From Salpingoeca rosetta (taxonomy: Eukaryota; Protista; Choanoflagellata), in assembly GCA_033442325.1 (NCBI GenBank), contig JAWQFM010000012.1, forward strand, positions 217,899 through 281,898: a stretch of 64,000 bases of DNA. The letters run 5' to 3'. Positions within the stretch are counted from its first letter, which is position 1. Each line of letters opens with the position of its first letter. The position numbers and the translations under genes are program-made. Positions 3,201 to 9,093 of this stretch are shown here, piece by piece. Under the pieces are notes generated by a model. That model was given only the letters and a program-made list of their open reading frames with translations. It did not search any database and was not told where the DNA came from.

Positions 3201-6200
3201 CGTCATCCCATTCACGTCACGCCAACAGCTGCAGTCGCTGCGCCTGACACAGCCGCTGATGTTCACGGAAAGCACGACAGAGGAGACCGACATCACTCGT
3301 GACGATGCAGACGCGGATGATGCAAGTGCAACAGATGACGAGAATGAAGACAGTTTCCAGACCAAGCCGCCGCGCTGCCTCGCCACTTCAACAACGGGCA
3401 GCAGTGCAGCATTGGTTGGCCGTTCAAAGCCGACACTGGCGTCCTTCCGTCGACGCTCCAGCATCCTCTCCCTGCCTGAGAATACCATCACCAGCAACGT
3501 GCGTTTGCTGCTGTCTCGTGTACCTGGGTGTCATACCATGCTTTGGGGATTACACTCATGTATTGCACTATTAGCACACACACACACACCCACACACTCT
3601 CTTGTGTGTGTGTGTGCGTGGGTGCGTGTAAGTGTGTGTTTGTGTGCATGTGTACGTGTGCGTTCCAACCACATTGTGCGTGTACGTTCTGTCCTTCCTT
3701 GGTTCGCCACCTGACCATCTTGACCCCATCACCGCATGCTCATCTTGAGAACAGGGACTGCAGGCTGTGGTGCACGCGCTCGACTCCCAGGTCAAGAACA
3801 TGGTGAGCGTCGCTGACACTGAATTTGTCGCATCATCCATGTTTGCATCATGCCTGATGGTGCTGCAGCAAACCTGTGTTGGTCCTGGCACTCAGCACAC
3901 ATGGCACACACACACACACACATACACACACATACACACACATACACCACACCACACACACTCGACATACACGACACACGACACACAATTCACTGCACCA
4001 CCACCATCACCACCACGCATGACAGGTGTTTGAGTTTGAAGGGGAGAAGTTTGGGTTCGGGGACTACTCGACTACAGACATGGTGCCAATCGCTATGGAC
4101 ACGCCGCGCGACACGGAGACAGACGCCGTTTATCTCGCCGGTGGCGATGACAACGACGATGTGGTGGTGGACGGCGACGTGGAAGAACCAGCACAGCGGG
4201 CCGACAACACGGCCACCACGACGGCCACCACCGCCGATCACACGGCCATCACCGCCAACAGCAGCGCCAACAGCAGCGCCAACAGCAGCGCCAGTGGTGC
4301 CGGCAACATGGAAGAGGAAGCCAAGCAGGAGGAGGCCAGTGGCACCAAGGGCAGCGCTGTGAGCGATGCCAGCAAACCGACAGCACAGGGTGACGAAGAC
4401 GATGGCGACATCATGGACAATGAACACACGTCACCGCTGCAGCTTCTCCTCATCCCGTCTCCACCACAGGTGCAGGTGTGTGCGCATGTGTGCGCATGTG
4501 TGTATGTGAACTGATATCACGACTGGTGGTCATCATGCATTGTCACATTGAGCAATAAAAATTCCTTCATGTTGTTGTCGTCTCTGCTTGTCCCCTCCCA
4601 AATATTAGTCGCTGATTGAGCTCATCAACCTCACATCTATAATTACGTGCCATTGCTCGTTCACTTGTGGTGATCAGACGGACGCCAGCGGGAATGCAAC
4701 ACTGGCAACTGAGCCCACCAACACCAGTGAAGACGACACAGCAGCAACAGCGACAACAGCGACAATAGCGACAACAATGTCTGCACCTGCACGCATCCCC
4801 TCCGCTCCAAACCAAGTTGACGCAGGCGCACGTGGTGAAGAGTCCACAGAGTCTGAAGAATCCTCAGCAGAGGAGACACTCGCGTTGCTCAACACGTGGG
4901 GCGAGACGGGCGAGACTGTGGACATGCTTGAGGACAAGCATGCCGTGCTTGCAAGCAAGCTCCACCGCTCGTGGGAGCGCCGTGAAGCACAGCGCCACCG
5001 CGAGTTTCTGGAGGCCGTGTATGTGTATGAGGACCAGATTGTTGTGAACATGATGCGTGTGGAGGCGCGTCTGCTCGCCGTTCAGCTGCAGCCGTTCCAG
5101 GCAGAGCTGGAGGTGCGACAGGGGAGGAGGAGGGAGATAGTTGTGTGTGTGTGTATGTGTGTGCGCGTGTGTTTTGGGGTTCCCGTTTGCATGTATGTGT
5201 GTGTGTGTGCACATGTGTGTATGGGCGCATGTGTCTGCGAGCGTGCCTGTTTCATGTTTGAACTGCACACTTTTCGTGTCAGTTGTGTTCCTCACCTTCG
5301 TCACCTCCATCATCACCATCATCACCATCATCACGACCACTGTCCCCCTCCCCCCCCCAATGACAGATGGCCGATGAGGCGCTACACAGCGCTGCCCGTG
5401 ATCTGCACCGCCACGGCGACGACGCAGCAGCGACACAGCTGACCGAAGACGTCCTCACGTGGGAGCAGACCCGTTCAGAGGATAAGGTGAAGCATCAGCA
5501 TGGCCTGTCCACGTGTTTGTTGTTTTTGTCTGTTAGCAATTGTTGTGGGTGCCCGCAAGCATGTTGGTTATCATGTAACACGGCTCTGCCTTCGTGTGTC
5601 TCACTTCTGTCTCAGTTGTGTTTTGAATTTCAAGTGCTGGCATCTGTGAGGCGCCAATGTGTGTCGCTCTCTGTCTCCATGACCATCCGCCTTGTATCAC
5701 ACATGCTCCTGACTGCCACCGCGCTTCTCACGTGCGTGCTCACATTCTTCCCTCGCCAGGTTGCTGTTGTGGACGTGAAGCTGGCGCGCATCTCTGCCCT
5801 GCGCCACGTGTTTGAGGAGATGAAGGCTGTCACATACGCCGATTGCATGTTTTACCCAGAGGGAACACAGGTCAGTCACATGCCCCACACCATGCACGGC
5901 GCACGTCGATTATGCGGCTGGGACACCAAGTTGTATTGTTGCTGCCATTCACACTGCCAGTTAGCTAATTGGCCAGTCCATCACCCACTTGCCTCGAGCT
6001 CACTTAGCCTTCAACGATCAACAACCCACGTCATAACAAACACATTGTGCCATGTTCCCACCACGCTCCACAGAGCCGTGCGTTGGCCGAGCAGCGTTCT
6101 CGGGCTGTTGATCAGACCATCGACAATCTCGACAAACGCGAGCGCCATCTCCTCCTCCGCCGCGCCCGCAGTGTTGAGGCCGCTGCAAAGTCAAAGATCG

Positions 6201-9093
6201 TAAGCTATTTGCTTTGTGCGTGTGCTTGTGTGTGCGTTGTGTGTGCGTGTGTGTGTTGTGTGTGTGCGTGTGCGTTGTGTGTGGACGCCAGTACTTGTGT
6301 GTGTGCGTCGTTGTGACGACTGTGTTGTATGATGTCTTTGACATCTCATCACGCATCACTATATGCGTCCATTCTCAACTTCCACCACTTGTGCAGGCAT
6401 GCCTGAAGGCCGAGATGCAGAACACGGGCACCAACCAAGAGGTGTGTGCGCTCTGTCGTGAAGTACACACATGCACAGAGAAACAGCACAGCACAGCACA
6501 GCACAGACAGACAGACAGACAGACAGACAGACAGACAGACAGACAGACAGACAGACAGACAGACAGACAGATAGACAGACAGACAGACAGACAGACAGAC
6601 AGACAGACAGATAGACAAACAGACACACGCACACACACGCACACGCACACACACACACACACACGCACACGCACACACACACACACACACACACTAACCA
6701 CCACTCTTCACTCATGTCCACAGAAGCAGCACATGCTGGCTGTCCTGCACGAGGATCTGCTGCGGGCGAAACAGGAGACGTGCGAGGGGCGGCTCGAGCG
6801 CATCCACCACCAAGTCTTCGAGTGCCGCGACCGTATTCAAAGCAAGCCCGTCAACAAGTCCGAACACAAGCAGGTGCGTGGCTTGCCTGACAAATGAAAT
6901 GACACTCGATTCAATGATACTTGAAACGATGATACTTGCATGCGCCTGCTGTGTGTCCAATAATGGACAGGTGCTCTCAGTCATGCCCGTACGCATGCAT
7001 CGTCTTCATTATCTTCATCCCTCACATGTCAAAACACAAACACATTCATGTTCATACGTTTGTATTTTCATTGAAATCAGCTGAAACTGATGCTGGAGCA
7101 ACTGCACAAGAAGGAGCAAGCGTTGACCACCAAGCTGGCGTCATACAACGAGAAGCTGGTGGATGCAGAGGAAACGAGCAACAGCACAGCGCCAAAACCA
7201 CGCGATGACGCCGAGGCCAGCGCGAACAAGACAGACCAACAGCAGCAACAGCAGCAACAGCAGCAACAGTGCATGCCACTCCACAACGGTCCGCTGCTCG
7301 CACAGCACAGGACACTCGGCACCTGTCGCCCACCATCACGCCAGAAGGGCTTAGCACCGCCGCCGCCACCACCACCTCCACCTCCACCGCCACCAGCGGC
7401 TGCACCATCATCACCATCAGCAATGACGAAGCAGCAGAAGCGCAAGGAATCGAAGAAGGAGAAGAAGGCGCTGAAGGAAGCGAAGAAGGAGGAGAAACGC
7501 AGGGCAAAGGAGGAAAAGGCCGCCATGAAGAAGGAGAGGAAGCGAACAAAGTCCTCCCCAAACAAGAACAAGAAGCAGCAGGAACAGCAAAAAGACCAGG
7601 AACAACAGGAAGTGGATGTTCCACAGCAAGAACAGCAGCAGCTTGATGACAGCCCAAGCACACGCACCAGCAAGAAGAGCAAGAAGAGCACCAAGAAGAG
7701 CAAGAAGTCCAAGAAAGGTGTCACCTTTGACCTTCCTTCCTCCACTTCATCCAACATTCCACCTCCACCACCGCCCCCTCCACTGCCGCCAACACAGGCG
7801 ACCGCCTCGGCAACACCATCCCCACCACCCAGCAAGTCAACAACAAAGCCCAACAAGGCTGCCAAGACCACAGCACCCTCTTCTGCACCACCACCACCAC
7901 CACCGCCACCACCGCCGCCACCGCCACCATCGACAGCTGGTGCCTCGGCTGGGACAATGAAGCTCGCACCAACCAAGCGGCCAACCTCATCTCCATCGCG
8001 GCCCACGCACACCCGCAACCTGTCCTCGTCATCCCGACCACAGTCCATCGTCATGGCAGATGCAGGCAGCAACAGCAACAGCAACAGCGGCAGTGCGTTT
8101 GGCGGCGGTGATTTGATGGCGGAGTTGTCTGCTGCAACGGCCAAGCGGGCACGGGCGCGGCGTGAGAGCATGTTCCCTCGTCGCAACGAGAATCAGGTGG
8201 CAGCTGCACGCGACAACGCCGTTCGCCGCCTCAGCCGCATCACCCCGTCGCGCGTCCAGCGCGCAGCACAGCGCAGGCTCAGCCGTCTGCCCCAACACCG
8301 TCGCCAGCGAAGCGGTGCTGGTAACACAGCAACAGCAGCAGCAGCAGGGGCAGCAGCCAACCAGCACCAGCAGCATGAGCAGCAGGGCAACGGCACTACC
8401 AAGGGCAGCCTCACTGCCGTTGAGGAGGAAGCCACCACCAGTCAAGTGGAAGATGCAGCCAGGTCAACGGATGCAAGTGGTGATGGCGGTGTGTGGAGAG
8501 AGGCAATGCTGTCTGCTGTGCGCGGGTTCCAGCAGAATTCGCTGCGACGTGTGGAGCACCGGCCCTCGATGGCGCGCCAGAAGAAGAAGACTCAGCTCGC
8601 ACGAGCTCCCTCCGCACTTGGTCAGTTCACGTCACGTCAAGCTGCTGTTGAGTTGTTTGGAAAGGGGGGGGGGGAGAATAGTCTATTTGGGCAAGGGGAT
8701 GGAGGAGGTGGATTCGCCACAAGCATTGTGTGTTGGTATCGTTGCACTCACACTCACGGCTGTTGTCGCTTTTTTCACATTCCATGTCTGCAGGCGCTGT
8801 TGTTGACGACGCTCTGGCTCGAATTCGCGTCCACACAAACTTGGTGAGCACATCTAGATGATGATGATGATGATGATGATGTTGTTGTTGTTTAAGTTGT
8901 TTAAGTTGTTTAAGTTGTTGTTGTTGTTGTTGTTGTTGTTGATCTTGGGTGGTTGGGGGCCGCCAGCGACGCGCGTGCTGCTTCAGGTTCTCACAATCGC
9001 CGGTGCGTTTACATGTGTGCGTCGTCACAGGAGTCATCTGATGATGACAGCGACGGCTGGTCGGACGACAGCGGCGACGACGAACTGCTCTGA
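236..9093 (+). CDS. Tyrosine-kinase-like pseudokinase fused to WHAMM/JMY-family Arp2/3 nucleation-promoting factor (~20 exons)
   Basis: Hand-spliced GT-AG exons. Kinase part (810-3019): PATIKRL; EARVLSGLRHKHVLSVGG; ELASGLSYLH; HWDVSTRNVFL; RWWAPEE; DLWCFGFCLYELFS; CPNTIYQLMLACWSLDPAHRP. Coiled coil (about 4880-7170): AVYVYEDQ...QLQPFQAELEMA...LTWEQ, resembling the JMY/WHAMM domain. Polyproline runs at 7357-7929. WH2-like REAMLSAVRGFQQNSLRRVEH at ~8497-8560. Exons 8794-8843 and 9031-9093 give AVVDDALARIRVHTNL-ESSDDDSDGWSDDSGDDELL*. The start at 236 is plausible (cagccATG), but upstream exons are not excluded. Confidence 0.75.

Follow-up and report, generated by a model that had tools for sequence, protein, structure and literature searches.

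The question raised by this locus is whether the WHAMM/JMY branch of the WASP family of Arp2/3 activators reaches beyond the animals. The gene concerned lies at 4777-9093 on the forward strand of a 64,000-nucleotide stretch of Salpingoeca rosetta DNA (contig JAWQFM010000012.1, positions 217,899 to 281,898), here called the window, to which all coordinates refer unless another contig is named. A first-pass annotation made from the letters of this stretch had read the gene as a WHAMM/JMY-type activator in an apparently non-animal holozoan. The WHAMM proteins, JMY included, have been concluded to be metazoa-specific and eumetazoan in origin (Kollmar 2012, PMC3298513), and Fritz-Laylin 2017 repeats the description of WHAMM/JMY as metazoan-specific. 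The Kollmar 2012 data set takes in Monosiga and Capsaspora for WASP, WAVE or WASH and lists no WHAMM for either (PMC3298513), and a choanoflagellate homologue would shift the origin of WHAMM/JMY to before the animal stem. The features described below suggest that the predicted product is, very probably, an Arp2/3 activator of the WASP-family type and that, on balance, it is probably also a divergent relative of WHAMM and JMY with a different, probably pseudokinase-bearing N terminus. As the model-based tests gave no match, it is not counted here as a proven member of the family.

The exon model was derived from a three-frame translation of 4700-9200 together with inspection of the junctions, and gives an eight-exon gene (Table 1) with a predicted product of 831 residues from the ATG at 4777. 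All seven introns are of the form GT...CAG, are in frame and measure 173-524 nucleotides each. Every element that had been picked out in the first reading (the conserved block with its following Trp and FY, the three polyproline runs, the motif ending in LRRV and the tail) is present on the forward strand. The polyproline runs of 8-15 residues fall between 7357 and 7929, and proline makes up 12.7% of exon 6. The WH2-like motif downstream of them has the residue spacing of one WH2 in a second locus of the same genome, L015, that scores above the Pfam cut-off. The central (C) helix and the acidic (A) Trp tail start 24 residues past this motif and occupy the very C terminus, the former reading VVDDALARIRV...L in exon 7 (judged by inspection against the Kollmar 2012 description and alignment) and the latter having 10 Asp or Glu among 20 residues in exon 8, where 11 residues separate the Trp from the stop. 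This tail peptide arises only by splicing 8620 to 8794 (phase 1, with a split codon for Gly) and 8843 to 9031, both junctions having canonical splice sites. The arrangement of proline-rich region, WH2, C helix and acidic Trp tail is common to the whole WASP family (PMC3298513); the tail alone says nothing on subfamily, so assignment to a subfamily must rest on the helical region.

The helical region extends from exon 1 to the start of exon 6 and comprises about 330 residues. What had been called a coiled coil is a long predicted helix: AlphaFold2, applied to exon 1 with a two-sequence alignment, leaves the first 30 residues disordered and gives one helix at residues 48-111 with a predicted local distance difference test score (pLDDT) above 90. 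A paralogue search of the same genome for a second copy of the region found only the gene itself. As reference we used the alignment of the WHAMM family, including JMY, from supplement file 8 of Kollmar 2012 (PMC3298513), with comparison by inspection and by short patterns. The block and the C-A tail that the first-pass annotation had cited for the family are real features of this alignment, in which VY.xED is followed by 17 residues and then by (L/I)(Q/K)PF.(D/E).RE in mouse WHAMM, fish JMY-type proteins, amphioxus, molluscs, annelids, a tick and a hydrozoan; all of these end in (I/L)xx(A/T)LxRI(K/N), followed by an acidic stretch that includes W or F (PMC3298513). The corresponding block of the window (5017-5112) reads VYVYEDQ, 16 residues, LQPFQAELE, and in a gapless comparison over 34 residues from 5017, 14 are identical to tick WHAMM.

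Over this block, extended by two residues into exon 2, a gapless match is obtained at 11 of 15 family-conserved columns, the columns having been picked by eye after the window sequence had been seen. With the gene's own composition, at least 11 matches in 15 have a probability of 1e-7 to 3e-7 at any one position, which rises to 8e-5 to 2e-4 for all 830 positions; at proteome scale (6 million residues) the block alone is expected 0.6-1.7 times and is not significant. The block match is convincing only because the protein had already been singled out by its polyproline-WH2-C-A tail. When the window is translated in six frames, a pattern of eight invariant positions is found once where 7e-5 matches would be expected, and it is found in none of 200 shuffles. 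The landmarks that follow keep their spacing to within one residue of that in the family: the Trp lies 39 residues past the block Pro (40 in the family), and a count that starts at this Trp finds Asp at positions 14 and 37 and an aromatic residue at 41, in agreement with the IQD and D..(R/K)FG blocks of the family. In exon 4, past an insertion of about six residues that is common to the related contig described below, ERHLLLRRARS resembles by inspection the family's E.LQL...K block. At the other end of the protein, the C helix VDDALARIR fits (I/L/V)xx(A/S/T)(L/M/I)x(R/K)(I/M/L)(K/N/S/C/R), again by inspection only, and its hydrophobic spacing is that of the WHAMM type (mouse IREALERIK), not that of WASP or WAVE; C-domain patterns are treated as subfamily markers by Kollmar 2012 (PMC3298513).

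A relative of the gene came from a phmmer search of exon 1 against 1.84 billion representative proteins, which returned the single match P0001 (E 1.3e-18, 47% identity), a fragment of a non-animal orthologue from the 5785-bp Logan contig L002 (SRR14727189). On this contig exons 1-6 all have counterparts, which agree with those of the window in order and intron positions and are 40-60% identical to them; for exons 3, 4 and 5 the lengths are exactly equal (37, 42 and 50 residues) and the identity is 50-60%. Exon order and intron positions held in common with L002 mean that the gene as predicted is more than chance. Conservation between the two begins at 4879, which is where the first-pass annotation had placed the start of the gene (4880); that position thus marks the onset of conserved sequence, whereas the gene model starts 5' of it at the ATG at 4777, and the frame of exon 1 is open 5' as far as 4609. 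L002 breaks off within the proline-rich exon. Its G+C content is 38%, against about 55% in the window, and every examined intron position is nonetheless kept.

The sequence upstream of exon 1 bears on the N terminus of the protein. Pfam PK_Tyr_Ser-Thr matches two pieces of 236-2738 with E values of 1.2e-8 and 8.9e-6, and the catalytic motifs there are degenerate, with HWD (1764-1787) for HRD, NMC (1818-1835) for DFG and VAVP (503-520) for VAVK, the beta3 Lys being replaced by Pro. A kinase fold without intact catalytic motifs indicates a putative tyrosine pseudokinase. L002 has, upstream of exons 1-6, the last kinase exon (C-lobe) and three linker exons (one with a shared RRRSS, another with GEK(F/Y)GFGDY), in the order and close spacing seen in the window. 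Its exon-1 frame has no ATG ahead of the conserved part, and its translation must therefore start upstream. Canonical donor/acceptor pairs in phase 0 are available in both sequences, from 4470 or 4476 to 4678 in the window and from 1860 to 2149 in L002. These features suggest that the pseudokinase and the WHAMM-like part probably form a single gene, of which the eight exons described above would be the 3' two-thirds; the complete gene probably starts near 236, and its product would begin with the catalytically dead tyrosine-kinase domain.

That the WHAMM-like part is instead a gene of its own, encoding 831 residues with a short acidic N terminus from the ATG at 4777, and that the pseudokinase gene ends at 4512, we regard as possible rather than probable. 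It would accord with the in-frame stop at 4512-4514 that is met if the putative intron is retained, with the sole AATAAA in 4400-4800, which lies at 4554, 40 nucleotides past that stop, and with the good context of the ATG at 4777 (A at -3). It fits less well with the want of an ATG before the conserved part in L002, with the unchanged order and close spacing of kinase, linker and WHAMM-like exons in both species, with the phase-compatible canonical splice sites of both, and with the distance of just about 265 nucleotides between the two parts. The stop at 4512 and the AATAAA at 4554 might also mark an alternative 3' end for a product consisting of the pseudokinase only. Within the linker, the conserved RRRSS (window 3445-3462, L002 753-770) looks like a candidate phosphorylation site for a basophilic kinase. 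The linker exons 3755-3802 (..AVVHALDSQ.K..) and 4026-4070 (VFEFEGEKFGFGDY) are faintly like the family's ..ALD.CG.K..LFE block, which stands at the end of the WHAMM N-terminal domain; as a lead only, from a likeness noted by eye, they could be a remnant of that domain.

Several results weigh against kinship of the helical region with WHAMM and JMY. The Pfam JMY model (PF15871) has no match in the window, searched exon by exon with E up to 10, or in L002, and a six-frame search of the 55.4-Mb genome gave no candidate; Pfam WHAMM-JMY_N (PF15920) matches no exon of the window or of L002 and no upstream open frame. Animal WHAMM and JMY are absent from the phmmer matches of exon 1. The presumed JMY-type region is divided into pieces of 37-112 residues over five or six short exons, which lowers the power of these searches, and HMMER filters discard weak partial matches, so that the negatives are real but weak. 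To them are to be added the choice of the block columns by eye, the four columns that are not matched (two aromatic, one acidic and one Arg), the expectation for the block alone at proteome scale, and the fact that L002 reads KPL where the window has QPF, conservation of the block being less than strict there. Further word-based searches and metagenome scans did not recover the C-terminal end of the L002 gene. Metagenome scans with alignments of exon 1 and exon 3 found no relative, and feature searches of the ESM Atlas gave scores of at most 0.86 to unrelated clusters and were uninformative. The six-frame scan of the genome with PF15920 gave one match, on contig C6 with an E value of 1.3, which was rejected as low-complexity noise.

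These negatives agree with a second explanation, namely that a polyproline-WH2-C-A module was shuffled onto a pseudokinase/coiled-coil protein within the choanoflagellates, that the likeness to WHAMM and JMY is due to chance or convergence, and that the gene represents a new WASP-family subfamily. Such a lineage-specific chimera would account for the failure of both Pfam models, of phmmer to reach an animal relative and of the block to attain significance at proteome scale, and it sits well with the missing WHAMM N-terminal domain and with the rule of Kollmar 2012 that a different N-terminal domain places a VCA protein in a new subfamily (PMC3298513). The genome also provides another protein with a WCA tail at locus L015 (contig C6: 978000-987999), where the minus strand at 3260-6418 and upstream exons make up a large gene whose WH2-like repeats number six or more, a case suggesting a raised prior for the shuffling of WH2-C-A tails in this lineage and so counting against kinship. 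Several of the L015 repeats score above the Pfam cut-off, and the gene has many polyproline runs, a C-like helix and upstream exons that are ubiquitin-like by appearance. We nevertheless consider a chimera rather unlikely, as the residues matched in the block are the family's own invariants (Y, E, D/E, P, F), the block sits where it should with respect to helical region, proline-rich part and tail, the subsequent landmarks keep their spacing to within one residue, and the C helix is of the WHAMM type and not of the WASP or WAVE type. The claim of the first-pass annotation that the protein is of WHAMM/JMY type is thus supported in part: it agrees with the 11 of 15 block columns, the landmark spacing and the C helix, and finds no echo in the exon-by-exon searches with Pfam JMY, WHAMM-JMY_N and WH2 or among animal proteins in phmmer; taking both sides together, we lean, somewhat above an even chance, towards a nucleation-promoting factor of the WASP-family type with a divergent WHAMM/JMY homologue as its helical core.

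The activator itself has also to be weighed against chance resemblance. Pfam WH2 (PF02205), run on the exons of the window and of L002 and in a six-frame scan of the genome, has 12 matches in the genome and none at this locus or in the L002 exons, and with a profile made from the genome's own WH2 motifs the WH2-like motif scores only about 4 bits and is not singled out. A sequence search of the PDB with the WH2 region gave chance matches only, and word-based protein searches with the whole of exon 6, with its informative part and with the last 180 residues returned nothing, the first two being swamped by low-complexity words. That the protein is no Arp2/3 activator, being a low-complexity coiled-coil protein with WH2, C and A likenesses by chance, is improbable: these negatives, the mostly low-complexity composition of exon 6 and the end of L002 ahead of the tail speak for it, but the polyproline runs, WH2-like motif, amphipathic C helix and acidic Trp stretch stand in canonical order and spacing and end the protein, canonical splice sites bring C and A together in frame out of two short exons, and the WH2-like motif is spaced like the L015 WH2 that scores above the Pfam cut-off.

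Judged from its anatomy, a divergent WHAMM/JMY relative of this kind might work as follows. The WH2-like motif would hold an actin monomer, and the C helix and acidic Trp tail would bind the Arp2/3 complex, leading to nucleation of a branched filament. The three polyproline runs could supply profilin-actin and dock SH3 proteins, while the helical region may pair or target the protein, like the corresponding part of WHAMM and JMY. The pseudokinase would stand in place of the N-terminal membrane-binding domain of WHAMM and JMY and could be a regulatory or targeting module.

A further proposal, that the WHAMM/JMY lineage is pre-animal and that its choanoflagellate form has a dead tyrosine-kinase domain replacing the membrane-binding N-terminal domain, is tentative, and we consider it unlikely to hold in full. 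The tyrosine-kinase signalling toolkit is expanded in choanoflagellates, and if the proposal were true the protein would connect this toolkit, physically and directly, with Arp2/3-driven actin assembly; along the animal stem, either the N-terminal domain of animals would have been acquired or the pseudokinase would have disappeared. Should the fusion be real, a pseudokinase front end would be a regulatory arrangement without precedent among the described WASP-family proteins. Salpingoeca rosetta as host would offer a genetically tractable unicellular model for the ancestral role of an actin nucleator linked to membranes, autophagy and microtubules. Were the kinship no more than apparent, the gene would still be a further case of WH2-C-A tails on varied proteins in this lineage.

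Table 1. Predicted features of the gene and of the sequence upstream of it, in window coordinates
Feature	Coordinates	Strand	Description
Tyrosine-kinase-like exons	236..2738	+	Probable N-terminal part of the same protein; approximate boundaries
Probable linker exons	2933-3019, ~3223-3520, 3755-3802, 4026-4469	+	Conserved in L002; approximate boundaries
Possible 5' extension of exon 1	4678..4776	+	Acceptor gatcag/ACG at 4678, in phase with donor 4470 or 4476
Exon 1	4777..5112	+	Residues 1-30 acidic/disordered, then long helix; WHAMM-family block 5017-5112
Exon 2	5367..5486	+	Helical; continues MA...W; conserved Trp (LTWEQ)
Exon 3	5760..5870	+	37 residues; best-conserved exon relative to L002, equal length; TYADCMF / ADCMFY
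Exon 4	6074..6199	+	42 residues, helical; conserved ERHLLLRRARSVE, resembling family E.LQL...K block
Exon 5	6724..6873	+	50 residues, helical; equal length in L002
Exon 6	7081..8620	+	513 residues + 1 base; opens with end of helical part
PolyQ	7237-7269	+	Within exon 6
Polyproline 1	7357-7395	+	Within exon 6
Lys/Glu-rich stretch	7426-7719	+	Within exon 6
Polyproline 2	7759-7791	+	Within exon 6
Polyproline 3	7888-7929	+	Within exon 6; then basic/Ala-rich linker
WH2-like motif (REAMLSAVRGFQQNSLRRV)	8497-8553	+	M-L-x-x-V, 7-residue linker, LRRV at end
Exon 7	8794..8843	+	C amphipathic helix VVDDALARIRV
Exon 8	9031..9093	+	Acidic A tail with Trp (DDDSDGW); stop TGA 9091-9093

The introns are rich in simple repeats (6215-6283, 6475-6694 and 8857-8941). 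Intron 4 has (TG)n right behind its donor and then (ACAG)37 and (CA)n ahead of its acceptor, and intron 7 has (GAT)8 and (TGT)n.

With WASP/N-WASP, WAVE/SCAR, WASH, WAWH and WAML the predicted protein shares a proline-rich region followed by a WH2 (here a WH2-like motif), a central helix and an acidic Trp tail. It differs from them in its C helix, which departs from the WASP or WAVE spacing, and in its N terminus, as Pfam finds no WH1, CRIB, WAVE-homology, WASH-homology or IMD domain in any exon. L015 resembles it in joining a polyproline-WH2-C-A tail to an unusual N-terminal part and in having one WH2 of identical spacing, and differs in its several Pfam-recognised WH2 repeats, its other C helix and its unrelated N-terminal exons. 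From WHAMM and JMY the present protein differs in its non-animal host, the family being described as metazoan-specific, in being recognised by neither Pfam model, exon by exon, and in its N terminus, where the membrane-interaction domain is not detected and there is probably a tyrosine pseudokinase with an acidic linker instead; its single WH2-like motif has two extra residues in the linker, and its Trp lies 11 residues from the end. Its likeness to them extends over the whole order of parts, from the helical/coiled-coil region through the Lys/Glu-rich stretch, polyproline, WH2-like motif and C to the acidic aromatic tail, and includes the VY.xED...LQPF...E block, the Trp and D...(F/Y) landmarks and the C helix (I/V)xxALxRI(K/R).

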